NCBI GenBank assembly: GCA_900088475.1
Contig: FLMG01001180.1
Coordinates: 1 to 43,191, forward strand
DNA: 43,191 nt
Direction: 5' to 3'
Source: Hyphochytrium catenoides
Lineage: Eukaryota > Protista > Hyphochytriomycota
Part shown: one piece after another, positions 5,563-43,059 of the stretch
How the letters are laid out: each line of letters begins with the position of its first letter
Position numbering within the stretch: the stretch's first letter is position 1
Position numbers and translations under genes: made by a program
The notes under the pieces: generated by a model
What the model was told of the DNA's origin: nothing
The model's input: the letters and a program-made list of their open reading frames with translations, nothing else
The model's database searches: none

Positions 5563-6432
5563 ATGGCAGGTAGTTTCCCAGTTTTCAGTCCAGTTTCTAG
5601 AGAGCGCGAGAAGCCAGTGAGATTGGATCTGACGACTATGGAACCGAGCGGACAACCCGTGGGAGCAGACGGTGTGGTTCGACTCTGTAAGATTCAAGGC
5701 TGCACTAGATATGTCCAAAAGCGAGGAGTTTGCATCACACATGGCGCCCGACGGACGCGATGCAAGGTGGATGGCTGCGAAAAGGGCGCCGTGCGTGGAG
5801 GTGTCTGCAAGGCACATGGAGCGAAGATGAAGGGATGCGCCACGCCAGGCTGCATTAGGCAAGCAGTTAGGGGCGGGCTTTGTATCGCTCATGGTGCACA
5901 AGTCAAGCGTTGCAAAGTTGAAGGTTGCGGGAAGCACTGTCAACGTGGAGGCGTCTGCGTCGCCCATGGCGCGAAGGTCAAGCGCTGCTCAGTTGAAGGC
6001 TGCGGAAAGTATTCAGTAAGAGGCGGTGTCTGTGTCTCTCATGGCGCCAAGGTGCAATACAAGCGTTGCAAGCAAGTGAACTGCACGAGGAACGCGCAGA
6101 AAGGTGGATTCTGCGCCACCCACAATGCTGAGAAGATGCAAAGCGCCGATGCTTCTTCATCATCAGCCACATCGACCAAACAGCCAATCAGTGAGGAAGC
6201 CCATATCCTAGCCTCCATGAAGCAAAGGAAGCTACCTCCGTTAGCTGGAGGGTCAGCCACTACCGCATGTACAATCATGGAATGCAGCGTGGCATCTATT
6301 ATTGGAAGTAGGGATGGATTTTGTTTGACGCATGAGCGTCAAGTGCTTCAGAGGCACAACTGTGCCCATGCTAGCTGCCCAAGATATGCTAAGATTGCCG
6401 GTGTATGCCTGCTTCATGGGAGTCACCGGTAA
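5563..6432 (+). CDS. WRKY19-like C-x4-C-x9-C-x2-H zinc-finger repeat protein (intronless, 289 aa)
   Basis: Six tandem repeats such as CKVEGCGKHCQRGGVCVAHG, an S/T-rich linker, then two further diverged C-terminal repeats; this repeat type is known from oomycetes, diatoms and plant WRKY19-like proteins. ATG to TAA open frame. Confidence 0.85.
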   Translation: MAGSFPVFSPVSREREKPVRLDLTTMEPSGQPVGADGVVRLCKIQGCTRYVQKRGVCITHGARRTRCKVDGCEKGAVRGGVCKAHGAKMKGCATPGCIRQAVRGGLCIAHGAQVKRCKVEGCGKHCQRGGVCVAHGAKVKRCSVEGCGKYSVRGGVCVSHGAKVQYKRCKQVNCTRNAQKGGFCATHNAEKMQSADASSSSATSTKQPISEEAHILASMKQRKLPPLAGGSATTACTIMECSVASIIGSRDGFCLTHERQVLQRHNCAHASCPRYAKIAGVCLLHGSHR

Positions 6433-12554: not shown

Positions 12555-14891
12555 TTAGAGCTTCTTGCCTACCCAAAAGCTGGCGTACATGTTTACTCTA
12601 TCGATACACTGGTCCTTCTCTCGAATTTGCACAGGTTTGCACTCGAAGCCATTCTCCGTGAAGAGCTTGTTATACCAGGGATGCTTCCCTGCACTACGCC
12701 ACAGAACCAAGCCGCCTGAACGGACTTTCCTGGCCAAAACTGAGATTTCTTCTCTAGCATCTTCCTCTGAGAACCAGTCCAGATGATCCATCACTATCGC
12801 TTTGGTAAGTTCGTTGTCCTCTATCTTCTCGCTCAGTACGTTGATAATCTTATCAGTGTGGATGCGGATACTTTTAAGCAGTTCGGGCCGTTCTCTAAAG
12901 GTTTCAAACGCACCAGAGGTGAGATACGTGGGGCAGCTCTCTTTGCTATAGCGGAGCATGAGGCAGTGGTAGAAGAAGTAGCTGTCGTTTTTGAACAGAG
13001 TGCACCGGACAATGGGATCCAGGGTGTTTGCCACATAATCATAGGCTGTGCCGTCCTCCAGAAGCATCTGCATTTGATTCGCAGGAACTCCTAGAGCGCC
13101 CCAGAGAAACTTGTCATTGTTGAGCAGCTGCACAAGCATTGGAGAGAGAATCTTGGGCCGAAGCTTCGTTTCCCAGATCTGCCACTGCTCTTCCAGGCTG
13201 TTCGCATGGCACATCTGATAGACAGCATCCCGTAAGCCAAACAGCTTGATGACTGCTTGAAAGATTCTGATAGCGAGTCCTGAGCACCCGGTTAAATAGA
13301 GATTGGTAAAGTTGTTGTTCCTATGCCAGAACTGATAGGCATAAGGGGACATCTTCGTAGCCAGTTGCGTCTCAAGGACCTTGTCAAATGCGGGTAGACT
13401 TCCTTCTCCAAAGAGCTTCCATAAATCTTCATAGCTAAAAGTTGATAGGGAAGCAAGCTTTAGCTCCAACATGTGGCCCTGCGCAGGGTTCATGTCTACC
13501 GCATGGATGCGGGCAGGTCCATGCAGAGCATACTCGAGCACGTTGCACCCTCCTGATGTCATCACCATCATTCGATCATCCGGCTGAATATCAAGAACCT
13601 TCAGATCCTCCCTAGGGTCCTCCCAGGCAAAAGCGTAGATGTAAGTATTGAAGAGGTTGTTCAACTTCGTATCAAAGGGCTCCCGCCACTGGACTCCGTG
13701 CCCATGGACGTGGTCTCGGTGTACAATGAATTCTGTTGGGGAGCTGGTAACTACCTCATGTGCTACGGCTGTGGCATCGCCAGCCGACATCTGGGGCAGA
13801 GGAGACCCGAGAGCTTTCTGCGGCTCTGTCTTTGCCATAAAGCTCTTCTGCCCTCCAACCCAAACATAGTACGGAATATAGATAAAAGGCCATAAGAAAG
13901 GGTTCAGATGGCTTGACATCTTCACCGTCGTAAACTTATGCTCAAGGTAGTCTCTGCGGGAAGGATGCAGGTAGATGCCATCCAGATCAAACCACATTGC
14001 CCAAAACCAGCGCATGAACCAGCCAAGCTGTCGGGTTGGGTCGCTGCTTGACCTCTTTGAGGATACATAAAAGTCAGCCACGCCTACAATACCATGTGGG
14101 CTCAGCAGCTCCACGATACGATCGATGACAGGGTATATTGTCTCCATCATGGAAAGAGAGTAAGAAAAGGTAATAAGAGAGACGTCCAGCTCCTCGTCGC
14201 CGTTACCCTTAAGATCTTCCTCCGGGATCTTGAAGGTCGTAGCATCGCTGCAAACGACAACCACGTTATCCCATCCCAGCTTTTCAAATCGTCGCCTTGC
14301 TACCTCGCACATGGAGGGCGTGATATCTACGCAATAGACCTTGTCAAAGCTTGAAATGGGCAGATACTCGTTCATTTTCTCGATGTTTGACCCAGTTCCA
14401 CCCCCGATGTCTATCCAAGCAAGGCGTTTACGGTTCCGCGGAGATCCGGCGGTGGACTGATGCGAGCTCGGCCGCTGCCTATGACGACTAGCGGTCCCGC
14501 TGTCTGTCTTGGCCTTCATTTGTGAACTTTGCCTCTCAGTTCCGGCATAGATGAGGTATGGGTAGAAGTGCATCAGCTGCCCAGCACATAGGCGGAGCAT
14601 CGTGTTTCGTCCCCTAAGAAGCCTGACCCTCGTGGTGTCATAGACCTCTACCTGGCCCTCATAGAAGTCTTCCAATCTGGACTGGTGAGCATTAGTCTCA
14701 GTGGTCTTTACAGATTCTTTGCGTCGCTTGAGAAAAGGCTTGACAAAACAGTTGTACGCGAAGACAAGCGTGGGCCTGTTGGTGACATACATCACACCCA
14801 GCACTACCGTGGCGGCAACAACGGCCAGCACCGCCTGGGGGACGATCAAGCTTCCTTGGAAGTCATCGAAGAGAGATTCAAATGGTAACAT
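12555..14891 (-). CDS. BTA1: Betaine lipid (DGTS) synthase, fused BtaB methyltransferase + BtaA (DUF3419) domains; intronless
   Basis: Single ORF (first ATG at 14891, MLPFESL; the ORF track extends to a TTG at 14933). N-terminal hydrophobic segment + FAYNCFVKPF, LEDFYEGQVEVYDTTRVRLLRGR, SAM motif WIDIGGGTG, FSYSLSM, GVADFYVS; second domain YIYAFAWEDPREDL, MTSGGCNVLEY, AVDMNPAQGHMLELK, MDHLDWF, terminal DRVNMYASFW. Confidence 0.93.
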   Translation of the reverse strand: MLPFESLFDDFQGSLIVPQAVLAVVAATVVLGVMYVTNRPTLVFAYNCFVKPFLKRRKESVKTTETNAHQSRLEDFYEGQVEVYDTTRVRLLRGRNTMLRLCAGQLMHFYPYLIYAGTERQSSQMKAKTDSGTASRHRQRPSSHQSTAGSPRNRKRLAWIDIGGGTGSNIEKMNEYLPISSFDKVYCVDITPSMCEVARRRFEKLGWDNVVVVCSDATTFKIPEEDLKGNGDEELDVSLITFSYSLSMMETIYPVIDRIVELLSPHGIVGVADFYVSSKRSSSDPTRQLGWFMRWFWAMWFDLDGIYLHPSRRDYLEHKFTTVKMSSHLNPFLWPFIYIPYYVWVGGQKSFMAKTEPQKALGSPLPQMSAGDATAVAHEVVTSSPTEFIVHRDHVHGHGVQWREPFDTKLNNLFNTYIYAFAWEDPREDLKVLDIQPDDRMMVMTSGGCNVLEYALHGPARIHAVDMNPAQGHMLELKLASLSTFSYEDLWKLFGEGSLPAFDKVLETQLATKMSPYAYQFWHRNNNFTNLYLTGCSGLAIRIFQAVIKLFGLRDAVYQMCHANSLEEQWQIWETKLRPKILSPMLVQLLNNDKFLWGALGVPANQMQMLLEDGTAYDYVANTLDPIVRCTLFKNDSYFFYHCLMLRYSKESCPTYLTSGAFETFRERPELLKSIRIHTDKIINVLSEKIEDNELTKAIVMDHLDWFSEEDAREEISVLARKVRSGGLVLWRSAGKHPWYNKLFTENGFECKPVQIREKDQCIDRVNMYASFWVGKKL

Positions 14892-15192
14892 CTTCCTCAA
14901 CTTCTCTCGTCGCTGTTTCTCTCCTTGGCGCAAGTGGCGGTGAAGTGATCAAACTGCTTCGGATGCCCACTGGATAGCGAAAAGCAAATAGTGAATCAGG
15001 AACCGTGGGCCGCATGTAGACTCAGGCTTAGCCTCTGCCTCTGCCTGGATGTAGAGTGAAGGCCCTGAGGGTCTGCTGATAGGAAAGGAGCAAGCTTGAG
15101 ATAACTCGAGCATAGTCAAAACGAGGAAGCGAGAAGAGGAGAGGGAATGGGAGGGAAGAGCGAGAGAGACAGAGGAGAAGAGCAGCGAGTGA

Positions 15193-19413: not shown

Positions 19414-21530
19414 TCAATGTCCAACATCTCGGCACGCTCTAAACCATTCATGCTGTTGAGCGTCTCTCAGAAGTATTCGGTCTTTGGGACTCTTTTGGAG
19501 GAACTATGGAAGACATGAGAAAGAGAATCAGAAAGAAACCTTGTAGCCGAAGAGCTGTGATTGCTTGTACTTACCTTGCGGATGAGGTCCCTCGCTTCTG
19601 GAGATACAAAGGCTGGTATTCTATATCTCGCTTCCATTATCCTCTCAAAGGTATCCTCCCTGGCCTGCGTTAAGGTTGACGGCATTTAGTTGGGGTCAAA
19701 GATGCTGTTAGGGGCATCTAATTCCATACAAACTCTCCTTACCTGTGCTTCGAAAGGAGGATGTCCGACAATAAACTCATAGAGCAAGACCCCCACGGCC
19801 CAGACATCAACACTTTGATCATACTCCATGCCCTATGGTCAGCATGTCCATTCAATCCTTTTAGCTCCATGGAGGACGTAAAGCTTCTCCTAACCTATAC
19901 CCACTTACCAGAACCATCTCTGGCGCTAGGTAGTCCAGAGTGCCGCACATCGTCTCTCGACGATTCCTGCAGAGAGCGATGGTGAATATAAGTTAATCCT
20001 CATGAGGAAAGGAGAAAGGGTAACCTTGAATCAACTCTTGCAACAGACCACCCAAAGTCTGCTAGCAGCAAGTCGCCCTGTCAAATGCGAACTTAGTGAC
20101 CTAGTCCCATTGGGCATGAATCACGTAGGATCAACGCCGGTAGTACCTCTCCACTGAGTAGAAGGTTCTCGGGCTTGATATCTCTGTGCACAATGTTGAA
20201 CTTATGGCAGACGCGCAGAACGCTGTGTAAGCCTAAAGTGAGACTTCCACACTTATTCACTTAAGAAGGTCTTCCTGTTAGGGGTCTACCTGATTAGCTG
20301 ATAGATAAACTTGGCTGCCACGCTTTCCGGGAATCTACAGTAGAACGGCAATCAACTCAATGGCCAGGTAGGGCTCAGGCAGTGCTACATCTTCTTACCT
20401 GCCCTGCGGTGAAGACTTGAGAAATTTGTAGAGCTCGCCTCCTGCCGCATACTCAAGGATTAAATAGACTGATGGGTCCAGAGCAGAGTGTTCAGCCAAA
20501 AGAGTTTAGGAGACATGAGGCCTACGAGGGAACAGCTCACCTCTCTTTTCATCCTGAAAGTAGGCATATAGCCGTAGTATGTGTTTAGCTCTCATCCGTG
20601 ACTGAATCTCTACCTCGCGCTTTAGCTGGTGCTGCACACCGGCTTGCTAAAAGTCGTCCGCAACAGTTATAAGCTCATCTCAAGTGTCCTGAACTTAGCG
20701 CACTCACCACAAGTTCAGACTTAAACAGAACCTTCATTGCCACAATCTTCTTTGAGAGCTTTTCACGAGCCAAGTACACATGTCCTAGGAAAGGAGCACT
20801 TTGTCAGATTGGCGGTTGTGAGTTCGTCATGCAACATAGATTATGGGTCCAGACCAAACTTTCCCTTGCCCAAAGGCTTGCCAATCTCAAAATCGTCGAT
20901 CGACCATCTCTTTCTTGGCGATGGACCAGTAGACTCGCTTTGCGCTTGTGCCGCTGACTGAGGAGTTATAGGCTGCTGCGGGGTGTAAGACTCGGTACAA
21001 GCGCTGTGATGCCGCTGTTGAGTACTGTGCAACCCATCGCGTGAGCCTGTTCTCTTCATAGGGTCAAGATATGTTCTCTGTTCGTCTTTGGTGAGCTGTA
21101 TTTTCTGTGTAGGATGCCGGGCGGATTCCAGCTCCTTCTTCTCCTCCCCTGACACTCGGTTGAGAGCCTTGCCATCATATGTGTTATTTTGAGAGTGAGC
21201 AAAGCCGTCTGTGCCAAGGTCCCGCACATTCACCCTAAGATTTTCCTTTTCGTCCTCTAATCCTGCCTGTGATTGCACATCTTCAGGCTGGACTTTAGCT
21301 CTTCCGGAAAGTTGAGACGAGGTTGATGACGTAACTTCTATCCTCTGAGAGGCATGCACCTGGTGGTGCGACCGAGAAGCCCCAAGCCCGTAAGGAGCGG
21401 CGACTCCAATTGGATGTTGGGGCCCCGCGAACCTCAGCCTTGATGGAGCACTCCTTCCAGTGGCTCTGCTGTTGCTCTGAGCTACAAGAGGGATGCTTTG
21501 ACGTTGACGAGGCTCTCCAGCCATCGGCAT
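19414..21530 (-). CDS. AURK: Aurora kinase, multi-exon
   Basis: Long disordered first coding exon ending [19 protein letters not shown]; ten GT-AG introns join [95 protein letters not shown]; stop TGA at 19414-19416. Confidence 0.95.
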
Positions 21531-22255: not shown

Positions 22256-25200
22256 CTACATGTCTGGAGAGGGCTTTGAGGTCTTGTTTCCCTTGTCGTA
22301 ACCTCCACGAGAACCTTTGTCAAAGCCTGAATAACCATGGTACTGGTGTGGGAAAGGCTGTGGCGCACCCCAAGAGCCGCCCCAATATCCTTGCTGTTGA
22401 GTGCCATAGCTGCCAGAAGGGAAGCCTGGCGGAGAAGCCTGTGAAGGCAATCCCGATGATAAGTCAGAGCCTGCTGTCCCTGTCCCAGTTGTTCCCGATG
22501 AAGCGGTAGACGATCCACTTTGTCCAGCCTGCCCCTTGCTTCCCCCTTGTTGGGATGGGTGAGGATGCTGGTGCAGATAGCCCATATCGTTGCCGAATCC
22601 TGGTACTCCATACTGGGGCAGTGCTTCGTAGCCAGCCGGGAACGCGCTACCACTATAGCAGCCAGATAGAGTTAAGAGAGAGAGTGGCGGGATAGAGAGA
22701 CGACGAAGAAGACCAAGCGAGGTTCAGCGAGCAGGAAGTTCAGTTAGCCGTGCTTCTACGGCGGATACTACTCTCAAAGCCCATACCTTGGGTTCGAGTA
22801 TGAAGGATCCACATAGCCCATACTACCGCGAGGAGGGTTCTGGTACATTCCACCCCTTGGGTGATTGTACGGTGCAAATCCCTACGGAGAACACAAGGGC
22901 AGCGATCTTCTTTAGATTAATTGGACAATGGATGACGATCTCCCTCAGAACAAAAGTCGCGTAGCCCATAGTTTCCATGTTTCTCGGGAAGATCAAAACG
23001 ACACAAAGAAGACCACATCAACACCGTGACTTACTTGCGGAGTCTGATAGTAGCCATAATTCCCTTGATAGTTGTACCCATAGTTATACATGTTGTATGG
23101 CGCCATGCCAGGGGGTGGCGGTGGAAGATACTGCTGCTGGTAGAGATGAGCCTGACTCGTGCTCGTAGATTGTCCAGAGGAGCTCGTGGAGCTCTGAGAC
23201 GTAATGCTGTCAGCTCCAGCTGTCGAAGATCCTGTTCGGGTACCCTTGCTGTGGGGCTCAGGTTGTGGCGGGTAGGGATGAGGGTAGAGCGCCTGCACAG
23301 CACATGAATCAGTGAGATAAAGATGATGGATACAAGCAAACACAGCACCAAAGAGTAAGTAAGGCAAAGCACCAAGAGCTCTTGCGGAGAAAACCAGTAG
23401 AGGGTCATTCTTGTGATAGTGGCGATCCAGAACCAAGCGGTATATTAATAGCAAGTCCTACATTGTACGGGTACTGCTGGTAGGCAGGGTCCAGTGGCTG
23501 GCGGAACTGCTGATGGTCCTTGTGCCCTCTCTCCTAAGGCCAGAACGATCTAAGCCATTTCTATATAAGAGAATAACGGGTACGGCTGTCCTTACCTTAT
23601 GGTGAGAGGTTCCCTCCTTTCTTCCATCACCTTGATCCAACTTGCTGGCTGCCGGATTCATGCCGAAGCCTGACAATCCTGGAGGTGCATTGGTCGTCTT
23701 CTTTTGTGCAGACTGCTGGAGTGGCCTTGTCACACCGACAGGGGTCGAAAGGGTCTCCTTCTGCATCTGTGAAGCCTGGGACGGTGCCTCCGCCTTGGCA
23801 CTACCCCAGCCGCTAGAGGAAGAGACAACAGGGGCGGCACCCCATGTCCCGGAAGCAGGAAGCGACGGAGACAAGGAAGTATCCTCAAGGCTAAAGCTGC
23901 CAAACTCCAATACTGGTGCCTCCAAGCTCTCTGACGTGCCCAGGCTGTCCCACTTGCCCATCTTCAGGAACTGTTTGGGGCTGTTGGCATGCAGCTGCTG
24001 GCTCTGTGGAGCCTTGGGTGACTCAGGCTTCTGAATAGGGCTGCGATGAGGGCTATTACTTTTGTCCGCTTCCTTCCTGACTGCCTGGACGGCCAGGGGA
24101 GAGGCTGTCTTCGGAGAACTAACCACCTCTGGCTTTGGCGCCCCAACCTTTCTGGGACTTTCCACCTTTACTCCCCAAGAAGTCTGAGCAGAAGGCGCTG
24201 ATGTCAAGGTAGCCTTCTTAGGTGACGCAGGAGCAACCCCCCATCCTGACTGAGCCGCAGATGCAGGTGCTTGGCCCCACCCAGTAGGCTTCGAAACAGT
24301 GTTAGCCTTAGGCGCCTCGCCCCAGCCTGTTGATGCCGTACTTGGCTTCTCTGCTCCCCAACCGGTTGCTTGTGGCACTGGTGAAGGCGTGGTTGCCTTT
24401 TCCTTTGAACCCCAAGCTGACGTTGACGCAGGCGCAGGAGAGGGAGTCGTTTCTTTGGCTGCCCAGGTAGAGCTTCCCCCAAGACTTGAAGGCTGTTCTT
24501 TAGACTCTCCCCAGCCCGGAGGAGGAGGAGGAGTGCTCTTGTCCTTGACGCCCCACGCAGACGCTTGACTTGCCGCGGAAACACTCTTTTCCGTGGTACC
24601 CCAGCCAGAGGGCTGTGGTGCCTTATCTTTAACTGTCCACGCGGAGGGTTGAGCAAGAGGCGTTGACTGTGTGGTTGTTGAAGCTGGAGCCCTATCACTC
24701 CAAGCGCCCTCAGGCGCGTCGTCCTTCTTCACTCCCCACGCATTCGCTGGCTCCACGTGTGCCGTTCTCTTGGGCGAACCGCTCGTTGCCCACCCCGTCG
24801 GCTCTGACTTAACGCCCCAGTCTGCCTTCTTACCAGTCTCCGCAGCTCCCGGACCCCAAGCCGTCCCTGCAGTGTCTCTGTTAGCGACTGGCTCCGCAGG
24901 TTCCACCGTTGCAGGTGACTTCTTAGAAGGAGAACTTGTACCCCAGGTAGCTCCAGCCTTTGCGGGCCAATCAGCAGTTTGGCCCTTGGAGGGGCTCGCA
25001 GGAGCCTTCTGGTTCCATCCAGCTTGCGCCTTCTCACGCTTCGGAGAGCTAGGGTGCTTGATGGCCGCGTCTTCCGATGCATCATTTAGAGTTTCTGAAG
25101 GGGCAGGAACGGGCTTTGACAGATGGGGAGCACCTCTCGCCCATGCGTTCACTACTCTTCTGGGTTGTGTCTCTGCAGCATTAGTAGACGAAGTTGCTGT

Positions 25201-26016
25201 TTCAGCACCTCCATTTTCATCGGAACTCCGACTTGGAATGGTCTCATGGTCCGCGGTAGTCGTAGACCATCCAGACGAGACCGCTGCCTCAGCTTTAGGT
25301 CTTTGCTGAGGAGCTTGACGGCCTGTTGGCCCTATTGAAGTTCCCCTACCAGTGGAATCTAAGTGTGGTGTGCCATTTTCTCTTTGTGTAGGCCTTCCCC
25401 CGCCTCTTCCACCAGCAGGCGGCGCACTGCGACCACGCCCTCTGCCACCGCCAAGACCTCCTGGACCTCCTCTTCCTCTGCCGCCTCCCAATGGCCCCGC
25501 TGGCGCATCCTTCGTCTCCTACTCAGCGGCCATGAAAGAATTATCATCTCAGTACTTTACCAACAGCCAAAGCCGATGCAATAAAGTTTACCTTCTTTTT
25601 CCCTTTTTTCTTGACAACGGGGGCCCAGTCATCTTCTACATTGCCCCTGTGATCTATTCCAGACAAATAAACTCGTCAATCCAGCCTATGCTTTAGCGGT
25701 GCAGGCATGAATGAGTGGTTGTACTAACCTTCCCATAACTCACTGATAGCTCTCTCTATCCTAGCTTTGTCACCTCCAAACTGCTTCACATACCCTTCAA
25801 CAACCCTGGGTGACGTTCCAGATGGACATATTTCAAGATAACCAGCGACCTAGAGACAGAGGCATATGAGCGCGCGTTACCACATCTAATAGATTCAGAA
25901 CTCACCTCCTTCGATAGCTTGCCCGTCGCCCGCTCATCTGGACCGCTTTTATTTATGTCACTTGTGAGTTGCTGCACATGAAGCCCTCGGCGGATGAGCT
26001 CTTGCTGTTCAGACAT
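22256..26016 (-). CDS. UBAP2/Lingerer/Def1/GIP1-like low-complexity RNA-granule protein with a GW/WG-rich central region, multi-exon
   Basis: Spliced N-terminus MSEQQELIRR...VAGYLEICPSGTSPRVVEGYVKQFGGDKARIERAISELWE (UBA/CUE-like) then DDWAPVVKKKGKKK, RGG box (GGGRGRGG...GGRGRGR), about 500 aa S/T/P/A/K-rich region with regularly spaced Trp, LEFGSF motif, and Q/Y/P/G-rich C-terminal exons ending KPSPDM-stop. Introns have GT-AG ends and keep frame where I checked. Confidence 0.8.
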
Positions 26017-27809: not shown

Positions 27810-29206
27810 TTAGTTCCCAGTAGGGCGACGGCCTCCTTTTTTCTTCTTTAAGAAGCGCTCCACTTCTTCCCAAGCTTCACTATCTTGTTCGGGGATGCTC
27901 GTTTCTTCCTTCTCTTTATTCTGATGCTCGTAGTTTGACCACTGCAACTCTCTTTGCCTCTGCCCCATTCTCTGCGAGGACTAGGACCCTCTCCTCTTCG
28001 CAGTTGCGCCAGGTAGATTCTTTCTAATAGATGCTGTATCCTCTAATAGTGCTCCACGTCATGTTAAGTTACGAATGAGGTAGCCACACCCGCGCGGGGG
28101 CACGAGCTGTCCGGCTTACCCTATGGATATACGTTACCATGGGCTGGGATGTCGAGGTTGAGAACTACGTCGACTGAAGGGATGTCAGTCCTCGACTGAA
28201 TAACGACTTCACTAGCAATGAGGATATTATGCTGCTTCGCTTTGCACTTATTTAGTGCGCCAAGCTGCTTGGGTTGCGTCATCTGTCCATGGAGGCAGAT
28301 GGCCCCAAAGCCCAGACAACGCAGCAGAATGGCTATTCTCTGGGAATTGTTGCAGGTAGCACCAAATATGAGTACTGCTTGTCCCTCGAACTCGTTAAAA
28401 ATAGAAGCCAAGTAGCAGCAGTCCTTGTACTTTGGGGCCGGGATAAATATTACTGCTGCACCGAAGCCTCCGGAGATGTGAACTTGTGGCTGATCTCTAC
28501 TTTAACAAGATCGATGAGTGAGTGAGGCTCGTTGGAGCTTTGCCATTGTGGCACTGAAGAGATAGGTATTCAGCTCCTTTGGGACGGATAAACCTTAGAG
28601 TATTGTTTATCTCTTCCAGTCCATACTTAGCATTCGGTCTGCCTCGTCCAGAACAAGGCATTCGATACTTCTTAGGGAGAATCCCTAACAAACGGCGACG
28701 AGGTAATTAACTCATCTTCTGCTGTACTTCTCCAAATCTCTTGGGGCTTGCCTCACCTTTGTTTTCGAGGTGGTCGACCAAACGCCCATGAGTGGCAATG
28801 ACAACTTGAGCTTTTTTGGCGAGGGCGACGGCCTGCTATGCCATCATCATATCTATGCCTCCTACTACGCAGGCACATTTAACCCCAATAACTGCTCCCA
28901 TGCTTCAACTTGCCCAGAGCTCTCTTTCTAAAGTCAAACAATTCTCTCGTCGGGGCAAGCATGACGGCATAAACAGCTGGGGGTTTCTTCAGTATGTTCC
29001 GGGATCAGGATTGCAAAGTCCCCGGGTTTTCCCGATCCAGTTCCGGCAACACGTCCAATGATGTCTCTCTCTTCCACTCCAGCTAGAATGCATTTTGCTG
29101 GATCTTGGTCGGGCGCGCCCACCCAAGGGCTGGTGCTGCCTCACAGGTAGAATCATGACAACCTAAGCTTGGATGTGGCAGGTTCTTCTTCCTTACTGCC
29201 CGTCAT
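27810..29206 (-). pseudogene. DDX47: DEAD-box RNA helicase DDX47/RRP3 pseudogene (non-processed)
   Basis: Fragments across frames: LGWARPTKIQ, RDIIG..GTGSGK, LAPTREL, IATHGRLVDHLENK | intron GTGAGG...TGTTAG | GFSLRSIECLVLDEADRMLSMD, TYLFSATM, LHGQMTQPKQLGALNK, DIPSVDVVLN, YIHRVSRTARA, SFVT*HDVEHY*RI. Multiple frameshifts and stops. 3' end approximate. Confidence 0.9.
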
Positions 29207-29851: not shown

Positions 29852-32800
29852 TCACATGCTGTTTATCTCGCCGACAATGTGAATCTTATGCCCAGGATAA
29901 AGTGCACAGAGAGACTTCTCCATCTGCGACGACGTCGGTGGCAGTAAGAGGAGCCGAGTGAGTCAGAACATGAGTCAAGGGCATTGCAACCATGTACCAC
30001 ATTACCTTCTTCCTTAACGAGAGAGTAGCCTCCTTCATCATCGCCATTTTGGGGAATGTCTGTCAACCGGAAGAACGTAGGCGGGTTAGTTTGGCTCACA
30101 AATATCGGACACGAGTAGCGATGGTGGTGACATACTCTTCCCATCTCTTCCGAGAGCTCTTCACGTTTCTTTTCGAGCTTGGCAATCATGTCCTTGAGCT
30201 TGGCTATGTGGTCAACCCTCTGTTGCAGTGAGTTTACAGTCCGGTCTAGGTACCTGATGTGAGGACACTGTTAAAAACATGTTATCGGTCTGACCCATCA
30301 AGTATGGCTCCCTTAGTCCACAGTCCTCTCTTCCAGTGCAGTACCATTCCTCCCATCTAGACTGAATATTTGGTGGAGGGTCTGTCCAAGGCCTACAAAA
30401 AGAAAAGCTATGCACTTACTTGCCAGAGTGCTGGATCATTACTAAGTGCGTCAGTCTCGGAGATGCCAAGAGACGCAAGGTGTTTTCAACGGCCGTCTTC
30501 AGTCCGGCAACGCTGGTGGCGGTCTGCTGCTGCATGACAGCTAAAAGAGCCACGTGGTAATGATCAATGAGACCACCGATGGCCGAACACATAATCGGTA
30601 AAGCAAGAAGGAGCCGTCGGAGGACTGAGTCACCTGGGATATTCGTGAGGCCAGCAAATCCTTCGTCCGATCGAAGTTCCGCAATCCTCTACGTTCCACC
30701 TGTCAGTCGCATTGTCTCCTACATCTATCGTGAGGTAATGCACCTATCTACTCCACCTGATCTAAAAAAGCTTGTAATTCCAGGAGATCATTCTCAAGTT
30801 TTGTGCGCACATCCTGACTTGAGAGAAGCTTCATACACGTCAGCGCGTCGTCTGTGGTCTCCCTCAATTCGATCTCTGGGTTTCCCTATTGAGTGTCAGC
30901 ATTAGGATCCTACAACTCCACTTAAATTTGACTACAGATGCACCATCCCCATGGTCAAAAAGATAGAACTGCATATGACCCACCTTGTCGTCCCAAGCGA
31001 TACTAGCGCCGTCTCCTTCCCAGCTAATTTCTACTGGCTCGCCTTCCGCTGGATCTACATCCCAGTTGACTCCATCGGTCGCTGAGGTCGAGAGCTCTCC
31101 AGCCAAGGCTGGCGCCTCTCCACTATCCGCTGGTTGCTCTGTGTCCCAGTTTATATCAACTGCCATGAGAAAGAGCGTTAGCCTGAGAAGGCACCAGGGT
31201 GAGATAACAACTTTGGAACGACCGGCAGCAGATGGATCGGTGTCCCAGCAGATAGCTCCGTTGTCCCCGCCCCAGTCCACTCCAGCTTGCTCTTCGGCAT
31301 CGTTTCTATTATCGTCGGGATCAAGGTTGGGAACCTTCACCTCAAGGCTACCCTTGTCAAGATCTAGAAACTGCTTTAAGGTCTCCAAGAGCTAATGAAT
31401 CACAGGGGAGTCGGTTATGAGACGAGGCACGGGGCAGGAAAAGCAGATTCAAACTTCACCGGCTCAATCGCTTTCTGGTTCTTTTGTGATGACTCCTTTT
31501 GTCCTCCTTTGCTCTTTGACTGGCATATGGGATTCATGATAGAGCGTAGAGATGAAAGAAGGAGATCTTCAGTTCGCGGGTTAACAGTGAATACCAGGCG
31601 GGATACTAGCTCTAAGCCTGAGAGACAAAACAAATGCAATCTACGAAGGACCAAGGAGATGGAGCAAAGACAATAGCATGAGGAGTGCCATACCACAGGC
31701 TCAATATCCCTGAGAAATGTCACGAAAGCTTCGTGATACTGAGCTGCATCTCTGACTCCTTCAAGCTTCACTGAGTCGACTATCTCTTCATATGCCGAGG
31801 GTAAATCCGCCGCGGTAGCCAACAGTTCGCGGCGAAAGTTCTTCCCCTTCATAGATGCCCAGATAAAGGGAGCAGCGATGGATCACAGACAAGAATGGTC
31901 GCACTTTAGCTTCAAAGAGATGCTCGACTCTTTCCACATCGCCCTTTGATACCTCTATTTTCAGTTCCTGGCATTGTTGGCTGAGCTTCCGTTCGTAGTC
32001 ACCGATAGTTCGTGTGTAATCCTACCATACAACGACACAAATAAATGAGCGAGGCAAATTAAAGGGGGAAAGAGCCTGGCTCGTCTAAAGCGGCAAAAGC
32101 CTTTTAGACCAAGAAGGAGCAACCAGCTGAGCATGGAGCAGAGCAGTTAATAAGAAACGAAGTCAATGGCATGACGAGATAGGAAGGCGAAGAGTTCAAT
32201 GCCGAAGGAGACTTCCTGCCGAAACACATTATTTGGAGTCCTCACCAATATCTTTCTATTTATCTCGCCTATCTGTTTCTCATTCTGTTGAACAGTACGC
32301 TTCATAGCCGGCCTGTAGACATTTTGCATAGATTGCTCTGTGAGGACTCCTCCTTTGGCCGCGAGAAAATAGCAAACACAGAGAACAATGAAGAATGGGT
32401 ATAGATGAGGAACATCTTCATGAAGGAGAGAGTGCCGTCATGAAGCATAAGAGTGCCTAAGAAACTTGCAATGTCGTTCAGGTGACTGGATGGCTTACAT
32501 TTCGTATGAAGCATTTTGGATGAGGACTCTGGCCGCTTCGCCGAGATACACATTATCCTTCTCATAGGCTTTGATGACAGCAGCCCAAGTTCTCATCACG
32601 GCTGAAGAGTACTATGAACAAGCGAAACAATCAGTTGCTAAGAACCTCGTGTGCAACTCCTCAAAGACCCATTCACCTGCCCAAAGAAAGTCTTCCCTTC
32701 GCCCTCTCCTGAATTCTCCAGCACCTCCATTATGGTTTTACACCTATAGTAATCAATGACTGCGCCAGAGAGAAAGTTGGAAAATGGCTGTGAGAGATAA

Positions 32801-41252: not shown

Positions 41253-43059
41253 ATGTGGGTACTGAAACCGAGAACACAGCTAGCGGCAGCGCTCCCCGTA
41301 CTTTTGTGGGCGCTACAGCTAGCGGGAGGCCTCTCGGCCACCCGACCAGCGGTTAAAGTCCCTCCGCCCGAATCTCCGCCTGCAGGTCTCTCCTTTCTCA
41401 CCCTTGGAGACTTCGGTGCCACTTTACCATGGCAGGGATCAGCAGATGTTGACGTTGAAGGTAATGACAAGGATCCAATGTGTCAGTTCGCCCTGACAAA
41501 CAGTGGACACAAGGGATGGGGCTCCCGCGTCAATGAGAAGGGACCCTATGTTGCCTGTAACTCCGAAGGTTGGTGGCGTCAGTGGCACGCCCAGGCCGCC
41601 CTGGCTCTTCTTATGGGTGATTCTTCAGCGAGGATAAAGCCTAAGGCTGTTATCACACAGGGAGATAACTTCTACTGGGATGGAGTGGCGAACCCGCAGT
41701 CTGAGATGTTTCAAGCAGTCTTTGAGGACATCTACACAGCACCTAACCTGGTGAACATTCCTTGGCTGATGTGCTTGGGCAATCATGACGTTGGCGGCAC
41801 CGGGTTTCTCTGTGGTACCGATCCGGGTACGGCAGAGGCCAATGACATGTGGCATAGAGAGTGCACGAGCGCCGAGGAAACAAGGGAGGCTGTGCTGAAG
41901 TACTTCAACGCTCAAAAGGAATATAAAGGGAAGAATCAGCGCTGGGTCTTTGAAGGTGCCTTCTATAAAAAGGAGTTCAAAGACGGAGATATCAAGGTGA
42001 GGAGAGAAATCCCTGCAATCCAAAGACCTAACGCAATCAGCCTCTGTTGCACATGCTGCCACTTTCCGTTGTCTTGCTTTCTTTCCGCCGTTAGGGAAGA
42101 CAATTGAGCTCTTACCGTCTCACAACCTTGTGTGTGTGTCATAGATTGATGTCTCCATCGCCTACTTACCTTGTTCACGGCACAGGTGGATGTGTTCACT
42201 GTTGATACCAACGTGGCCACTACCCATGGAATGAAGGAGATATGTTGCCAGTGCTTTGGCTATGGGAACAAGGACACATCTATCACATGTGCTAAAGGAA
42301 AGAACGCGGCCAGTTGTGGTATGTGCTCGAATATTGAAGTTGGCAAGCCACACTGTGCACCACCGGACATCTACAATGCGTGCACAGAGGTTCTTGAAGG
42401 CTGGTTTGAGGAATCAATGGCCGGTTTGGAGAAGGCTTTAGAGGCCTCTGATGCCACATGGAAGGTAATCAGCAGTCATTATTGCCCTGTAAGGCACTTT
42501 GCTGCGGCAGATAAGGAGTACAAGCGGATTATGACGGTTATTGGAGGAAAGGCGCATATCTGGCTCTGCGGTNNNNNNNNNNNNNNNNNNNNNNNNNNNN
42601 NNNNNNNNNNNNNNNNNNNNNNNNNNNNNNNNNNGGGAGGCAGGAGGTGTATATGCCTTCACAGAGCTCTACTTTGGGCCTCAGTGGGCGACGGTGAGAT
42701 TTCTAGGGCCAGACAAAACTTGGAGATGGGACCAAACCTTTACAAAGGGCGGTTCGGAAGAGCTCTACTGTTCACATATTCCTGTCGATGGGGGCCCTGC
42801 CGTTCAGTGCAAGGACGCCAAGAACTGGAAGCCATCAACTAGCGCTCCATCTCGAAGTCCTACACAAGGAGGAAGCGGAGGAGAAGGAGATGGGGTAGTG
42901 CCAAGTAGCTCTGGTGGGGACGCTGGCGGTACAACTGGGAACACTGGGGACGGCCAGAAAGAGACGTCAGCTGCCAGGCAGTCCTTAATACCAGCCTCTT
43001 GTGGTTTCCTCATATACCTAGCTATGATAGCTCTGCTGATGGCATCTGCTCAATCATAA
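41253..43059 (+). CDS. Secreted calcineurin-like metallophosphoesterase (purple/tartrate-resistant acid phosphatase type), probable GPI anchor
   Basis: Signal peptide (LAAALPVLLWALQLAGGLSA), motifs LGDFG, GDNFYWDG, LGNHD, VDTNVATTHG..EICCQCFGY, ISSHY, WLCG(gap); intron at about 41997-42185; S/G/T-rich stalk and hydrophobic C-terminal tail (FLIYLAMIALLMASAQS). Confidence 0.88.
42573..42634. other. Assembly gap (N run) covering the GHxH metal-binding motif of the phosphoesterase
   Basis: Ns start right after WLCG; frames on the two sides differ, and the expected GHxH and GAGG segments are absent, so the true gap is probably longer than 62 nt. Confidence 0.85.

Follow-up and report, generated by a model that had tools for sequence, protein, structure and literature searches.

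GW/WG platforms are the main known route by which Argonaute is coupled to downstream machinery. Work on them has covered animals, plants, fission yeast and ciliates, and our literature search gave no paper that connects them with stramenopile-type protists. In the description of Karlowski et al. 2010 (PMC2910046), WG/GW domains contain much Gly, Ser and Trp and little Cys, Phe, His, Met and Tyr, with conservation limited to the WG/GW pairs; across the known platforms, nothing persists but these pairs and the overall composition (PMC2910046; list in PMC12477606). Another described layout is that of UBAP2L, which comprises a UBA domain, an RGG box, residues 205-290, a G3BP-binding DUF region and disordered regions; residues 205-290, after the RGG box, are required for the docking of stress granules with P-bodies (PMC11248227). 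Proteins of this type are condensate nucleators (PMC11248227, PMC11962251), and UBAP2 and UBAP2L are reported to be the human orthologues of Def1 (reference cited in PMC11248227). Here we analyse a gene on the minus strand of contig FLMG01001180.1 from Hyphochytrium catenoides (43,191 nt; this whole stretch is called the window below), whose predicted product carries 24 Trp, mostly next to Gly, in one long exon. Our tentative preference is to read it as a granule-type adaptor whose Trp array would dock Argonaute or another Trp-pocket protein, every partner being one that we infer from the sequence.

The core of the locus is a 677-codon open reading frame (ORF; 23458-25491, minus strand) in DNA of 52-59% GC. 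From a three-frame reading of 26300-22100 and the DNA itself we built a gene model in which eight exons and seven GT-AG introns, from 26016 to 22256 on the minus strand, form one frame of 1,012 codons. The start ATG lies at 26016, with an in-frame stop eight codons 5' of it, and the frame closes with a TAG at 22258-22256. A scripted join, which counted codons, stops and junction residues, gave 3,039 nt in which the only stop is the terminal one. The introns measure 56, 75, 73, 62, 169, 153 and 134 nt with consistent phases; all seven have GT at the 5' end and AG at the 3' end (TAG in 6/7), and their GC content is 0.41-0.51 compared with 0.567 in the coding part. Exon 5 seems the least certain, as its donor is GTAGGA and the frame is kept when it is skipped. 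Judged from these features, the locus is a real protein-coding gene, and its product is predicted to be a protein of about 1,000 residues that is almost wholly disordered. Its parts follow in the order UBA/CUE-like piece, DDW..VVKKKGKKK patch, RG/RGG box, disordered Trp region, VLEFGSF motif and tail.

The central feature is the Trp-Gly array of exon 4. The exon contains exactly 24 Trp (codons 25269 to 23808), 18 of them in GW or WG context and seven in GWG. A first-pass annotation of this DNA had described such an array, and both its counts and its six quoted examples (SGWGT, PGWGE, TGWGA, TGWGE, TGWGQ and SGWGV) were all found in exon 4. Two motif types, (S/N)AWGVK(D/E)K and (S/T)GWG(A/E/Q/T), recur in partial alternation. 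We compared the array with 20,000 shuffles of exon 4, in which Gly-flanked Trp numbered 5.1 ± 2.0 and never reached 18, GWG occurred 0.3 times, and the observed minimum Trp spacing of 8 was reached in 0.075% of cases. The regular spacing that had also been claimed holds for the 19 Trp of the core (exon-4 residues 161-460), which lie 8-29 residues apart with a coefficient of variation (CV) of 0.31 against 0.90 expected, none of the 20,000 shuffles being as regular; it does not extend to the other five, which are 36-75 residues apart.

Over the roughly 490 residues of the array, Trp is nearly the sole aromatic, set in small-residue contexts of the form (S/T/A)(G/A)-W-G. Exon 4 as a whole has no Cys, no Tyr and four Phe, with an isoelectric point (pI) of 9.8. 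When folded alone with AlphaFold, it gave a mean predicted local distance difference test score (pLDDT) of 37.9 and no secondary structure, and this low score together with the composition suggests intrinsic disorder. The DNA of the array has no tandem repeats, and its direct repeats amount to a single 22-nt pair of 82% identity. Recent repeat expansion is thus ruled out as the origin of the array: the motifs do not stem from recent duplication, and the Trp-Gly motifs seem to have persisted while the linkers diverged.

Scoring as an Argonaute hook gave a mixed answer. We re-implemented the published plant WG/GW matrix and extension rule (PMC2910046) and computed dos, one of the two criteria of Karlowski et al. 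2010 (dos of at least 6.99, ics of at most 2.14). Five domains were obtained in exon 4, the main one covering residues 258-449 with 13 Trp and 60.8 half-bits, while residues 33-96 of exon 8 scored 34.7. The published dos cut-off is 6.99 half-bits, the 'medium' class runs from 25 to 150, and TNRC6A-C score 90-107 (PMC2910046). The low content of Cys, Phe, His, Met and Tyr in exon 4 is also in line with PMC2910046. The core spacing of 8-29 residues is compatible with the occupancy of neighbouring Argonaute Trp pockets. In GW182-AGO2 structures, Trp about 10 or more residues apart can fill neighbouring pockets.

Several observations weigh against the adaptor reading. On the dos scale, shuffled sequences of identical composition themselves reach 33.8 ± 11.4, so the observed 60.8, well above the cut-off as it is, lies only about 2.4 standard deviations over composition alone. 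Unlike the reference domains of plants and animals, the array is basic, with a pI of 9.8, and contains much Ala, Pro, Thr and Lys but little Asn. Human AGO2 has three Trp pockets whose strong conservation is confined to metazoan AGOs; elsewhere they vary, although GW interactions have been reported for plants, fungi and the PIWI clade (PMC12477606). Evenly spaced aromatics are also expected of a pure 'sticker' region. Our Pfam scan, which covered exons 1, 2, 4, 6 and 8, and with them the greater part of the C-terminal tail, at an expectation value (E) of up to 10, returned no UBA, CUE, DUF3697, DUF1296 or RRM match in these five exons. Exon 4 had 0 matches in an exhaustive HMMER search of 1.84 billion representative proteins, a word-index protein search with exon 4 and the FG-motif region (residues 510-560) found no relative, and neither did a search of JGI metagenome contigs with exons 4 and 8. 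Finally, a sequencing-run search listed no public RNA run for the locus.

Other searches added little. The lone Pfam row, UL135 (E 0.02), is spurious, and an ESM Atlas feature search with exons 4 and 2 gave no usable match; neither the protein nor the metagenome searches found an orthologue of the protein. No exon matched a PAM2-type regular expression modelled on the ELM pattern, and the peptide GMNPAASKL, which bears a weak likeness to PAM2, fails that pattern. The window (43,191 nt) contains no Argonaute.

The domain at the N-terminus is split by introns, and the fold searches used exon 2 alone. Its AlphaFold model is compact and helical, with three helices and a mean pLDDT of 79.6. About 20 of the top 50 matches from a structural aligner were UBA, CUE or EF-Ts UBA-like domains (Z 3.8-5.0), although Z values of 4-5 are not discriminating for a 40-residue helical piece. 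The best of them were the CUE domain of Cue2 (1otr) and the UBA domain of EDD, both at Z 5.0, and the top 50 further included UBA domains of Dcn1, NBR1, TNK1, TAP, FAF1, TDP2 and HHR23A and CUE domains of Tollip, SMARCAD1 and TAB2. Foldseek returned nothing significant, with UBA domains in six of eight weak rows (E above 6); an Atlas fold search gave a generic helical list with one cluster bearing CUE, and a sequence search of the PDB gave chance rows only. The loop ICP and the helix-3 AISELW presumably recall the MFP and di-Leu signatures of CUE domains. Taken together, exon 2 is consistent with a UBA/CUE-like fold, short of proof, and the domain possibly binds ubiquitin. The UBA/CUE-like N-terminus of the first-pass annotation is in keeping with the prominence of these folds among the structure matches, and no sequence match in Pfam or the PDB supports it.

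The W..V.KKK patch of exon 3 and the RGG box at the start of exon 4 had been noticed as well, and both were found. The stretch KKKGKKK in exon 3 resembles a nuclear localisation signal. In the RGG box, RGG occurs at exon-4 residues 16 and 38 and RG at 14, 16, 26, 28 and 38, giving two RGG and five RG within residues 14-40. RG/RGG boxes typically serve in RNA binding and arginine methylation.

Further along exon 4, LEFGSF occupies residues 537-542 (APVLEFGSFSLE at 537) and takes two of the four Phe of the exon. Among shuffles of exon 4, FG.F appeared in 0.2% and Phi-x-FG-x-F in 0.03%. Phi-x-FG is the consensus for the cleft of the G3BP NTF2-like domain, and USP10 uses F-G-D-F (PMC11962251). VLEFGSF fits both Phi-x-FG and the FGDF-type form (hydrophobic-x-F-G-[D/E/S]-F), and so this segment of a predicted disordered region fits a candidate G3BP-binding motif. 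The FGDF or Phi-x-FG motifs of USP10, Caprin1 and alphavirus nsP3 have the hydrophobic-x-Phe-Gly-x-Phe pattern in common with it, a pattern that touches the G3BP cleft through its Phe and Gly; compared with these, the motif here is present in a single copy and has Ser in place of Asp. The tail, formed by exons 5-8, comprises 272 residues and is prion-like in composition (G 16%, P 13%, S 13%, Q 10%, Y 10%), with YWGGSWG in the last exon. The first-pass annotation had listed LEFGSF and a Q/Y/P-rich tail with YWGGSWG, and both were found.

According to the above-described features, the protein may be an adaptor of the kind that builds messenger ribonucleoprotein (RNP) granules. Its exposed Trp side chains would act as multivalent ligands for Trp-binding pockets, the likeliest being those in the PIWI domain of the host Argonaute, as in GW182, NRPE1, SPT5L and Tas3. 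The RGG box, FG motif and tail would connect the complexes bound in this way with RNA and G3BP-type condensates: RNA could be contacted through the RGG box, G3BP through the FG motif and ubiquitin through the UBA/CUE-like domain, with self-association through the tail. That one protein couples Argonaute, G3BP and ubiquitin, as had been proposed, is a reasonable hypothesis suggested by the UBA/CUE-like fold, the GW/WG score and the FG motif, and not a finding. The coordinates of all features are collected in Table 1.

Table 1. Exons and predicted features of the Trp-array gene (positions in the window)
Feature	Position	Strand	Description
Exon 1	25906..26016	-	37 codons from ATG; polar leader with LSKE at its end; donor GTGAGT at 25905
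Exon 2	25729..25849	-	VAGYLEICPSGTSPRVVEGYVKQFGGDKARIERAISELWE; UBA/CUE-like three-helix piece of 40 residues (VAGYLEICP ... RAISELWE)
Exon 3	25592..25653	-	Basic patch DDWAPVVKKKGKKK, the W..V.KKK motif; resembles a nuclear localisation signal
Exon 4	23596..25518	-	641 codons; predicted fully disordered; RGG box, 24 array Trp, FG motif
RG/RGG box	25395..25491	-	Start of exon 4, about residues 10-42; exon 4 opens with GGGRGRGGPGGLGGGRGRGRSAPPAGGRGGGR
GW/WG array	23806..25269	-	24 Trp, 18 Gly-flanked; two recurring motif types
VLEFGSF	23890..23910	-	Phi-x-FG / FGxF short motif of the type for the G3BP NTF2-like cleft
Exon 5	23462..23533	-	24 codons, ERGHKDHQQFRQPLDPAYQQYPYN; acceptor TTAG, donor GTAGGA; phases fit
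Exon 6	23035..23292	-	86 codons; S/T-rich, then Q/Y/P/N-rich, NMYNYGYNYQGNYGYYQ
Exon 7	22787..22881	-	31 codons + 2 bases; P/Y/G/N-rich
Exon 8	22256..22652	-	Includes the stop; G/S/Q/P/Y-rich tail with YWGGSWG; C-terminal end DKGSRGGYDKGNK

The strongest alternative keeps the same gene and scaffold and takes the Trp to be generic aromatic stickers that drive condensation without a specific Trp-pocket partner, with Trp, and Tyr in the tail, making cation-pi and pi-pi contacts to RNA and, within the protein itself, to the RGG box and the Lys-rich linkers. We consider this possible, if somewhat doubtful. The very even spacing (CV 0.31, matched by 0/20,000 shuffles) suits it, as do Trp as the sole aromatic of the array, the 10% Tyr of the tail, the RGG box beside a basic array of pI 9.8, the predicted full disorder of exon 4, a dos score more than half of which is explained by composition, and the condensate nucleation known from UBAP2L-type proteins. 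What it leaves unexplained is the Gly that adjoins 18 of the 24 Trp and the seven GWG, a signature of known Argonaute hooks that would be superfluous for stickers; moreover, natural sticker regions usually employ Tyr or Phe, and the tail of this same protein uses Tyr. The sticker role is also compatible with Argonaute docking, and the two are not mutually exclusive.

A fuller version of the preferred adaptor reading would make the protein a lineage-specific, convergent counterpart of GW182, namely a UBAP2L/Def1-like granule scaffold whose segment after the RGG box was expanded into a 24-Trp Argonaute platform, thereby joining small-RNA complexes, G3BP-type stress granules and ubiquitin signalling in a single polypeptide of a non-animal, non-plant eukaryote. 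We regard this full combination as unlikely.

The same array features would serve equally if the Trp motifs recruited Trp-pocket effectors other than Argonaute, in which case the protein would be an RNP-granule adaptor for deadenylation or decay. The Trp motifs of the GW182 silencing domain bind CCR4-NOT (CNOT9/NOT1) and PAN3. GW182 is described as bridging Argonaute to the PAN2-PAN3 and CCR4-NOT deadenylases (PMC4615383), and in UBAP2L it is the stretch following the RGG box that connects stress granules with P-bodies (PMC11248227). Nothing in the sequence tells this role from Argonaute binding, however, and a PAM2 motif was not found in the exons; we give the idea rather little credence.

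Lower still we place a Def1-like nuclear factor, in which a CUE-type domain and the Gln/Tyr-rich tail would act in the ubiquitylation of stalled RNA polymerase II, and the GW array would serve as an Argonaute platform at the polymerase, comparable to those of plant NRPE1 and SPT5L. The best structural matches of exon 2 include CUE domains (Cue2 1otr at Z 5.0; Tollip, SMARCAD1 and TAB2), and the lysine patch could act as a nuclear localisation signal. Such a function would also agree with the reported orthology of UBAP2 and UBAP2L to Def1 (reference cited in PMC11248227) and with the presumed likeness of the ICP loop and AISELW to CUE signatures. Against this stand the lack of a sequence-level match to CUE or Def1 models, the FGDF-type motif and RGG box, which suggest cytoplasmic granules, and the poor discrimination of Z 4-5 for a 40-residue helical piece. 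A locus without function, whether a chance ORF, a pseudogene or a mis-modelled region, is very improbable: the missing RNA run, the missing homologue in protein searches, and the tentative exon 5 and weaker donors GTTAGT and GTAGGA would allow it, but it is contradicted by a 677-codon ORF in DNA of 52-59% GC, by eight pieces and seven GT-AG introns that join in frame with a single stop, by introns lower in GC than the exons, and by motif statistics that no shuffle matched.

We may thus regard the protein as a well-defined, testable candidate and not yet a result. If the adaptor reading is true, the gene would give a direct handle on the wiring of small-RNA silencing to RNP granules outside animals and would add a further case of the convergent invention of Argonaute adaptors.

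The window also holds other genes. Downstream of the Trp-array gene, 20841-21530 (minus strand) encodes a disordered leader of about 210 residues followed by a kinase glycine loop that by eye resembles Aurora kinases; Pfam gave no match for this first exon by itself. Upstream, 28121-28411 (minus) is the C-terminal fragment of a DEAD-box helicase (PF00271, E 1.9e-11) from an intron-split gene. A 174-codon ORF at 30864-31388 (minus), with no Pfam match, bears six acidic Trp motifs that follow the pattern hydrophobic-x-W-(D/E/G), namely VDWGG, ICWDT, INWDT, VNWDV, ISWEG and IAWDD, which we take to recall the shuffled ATG8-interacting motifs of C53/CDK5RAP3. The intronless 289-codon ORF at 5563-6432 (plus) consists of six WRKY19-type zinc fingers (Zf_WRKY19, PF24906, E 2.9e-42). 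At 12555-14933 (minus) lies an intronless betaine-lipid-synthase-like ORF with DUF3419 and a methyltransferase domain, whose best relatives are from chytrid fungi (52-57% identity) and the oomycete Aphanomyces (51-53%). At about 42500-42640, a run of unknown bases, which appears as X in two ORF translations, marks a gap in the assembly within a metallophosphoesterase-like gene region.

Among known systems, GW182/TNRC6/Gawky share with this protein a disordered GW/WG array of comparable dos, 60.8 here against 90-107 half-bits there, and the combination of a UBA-like domain with a Gln-rich region in one protein. They differ in that the UBA-like piece comes first here, that RRM, PAM2 and sequence similarity were not found in our searches, and that the RGG box and the FGDF-type motif of this protein are both absent from GW182. 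We rejected membership of the GW182 family because no RRM was found in the five exons scanned and no PAM2 in any exon, the domain order differs and no homology was found, and the likeness would be by analogy only. Reiterated WG/GW pairs in hydrophilic disordered sequence, as here, also characterise NRPE1, SPT5L/KTF1, GTB1, Tas3 and Tetrahymena Wag1/CnjB. The plant, yeast and Tetrahymena arrays are carried by polymerases, elongation factors or other scaffolds; those of plants have clear tandem repeats and are rich in Gly, Ser, Asn and Asp, whereas the present array is basic, rich in Ala, Ser, Pro, Thr and Lys, and devoid of DNA repeats.

In module order, the protein comes nearest to UBAP2L, UBAP2, Lingerer and Def1, with a UBA/CUE-type domain, an RGG box, a disordered segment, a G3BP motif and a low-complexity tail as the common sequence of parts; the UBAP2L-type features present here are the RGG box after the UBA-like piece and the long low-complexity tail of 272 residues. 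The UBAP2/Def1-type scaffold of the first-pass annotation stands as far as this order goes, and falls short at the level of sequence: there is no detectable homology to UBAP2L, Lingerer or Def1, Pfam UBA and DUF3697 are unmatched and no relative was obtained. For DUF3697, the conserved UBAP2/Lingerer motif, exon 4 gave no Pfam match at E up to 10 and offers only the short VLEFGSF. We therefore consider that the likeness parallels these proteins in layout only and does not make this one a member of their family. In the literature, we did not find an expansion of the post-RGG segment into a Trp array described for the UBAP2L/Lingerer/Def1 family. Relative to UBAP2L, this protein has an enlarged post-RGG segment of about 490 residues, with 24 Trp that lie mostly in GW/WG, and the array occupies the place of the P-body-docking segment of UBAP2L.

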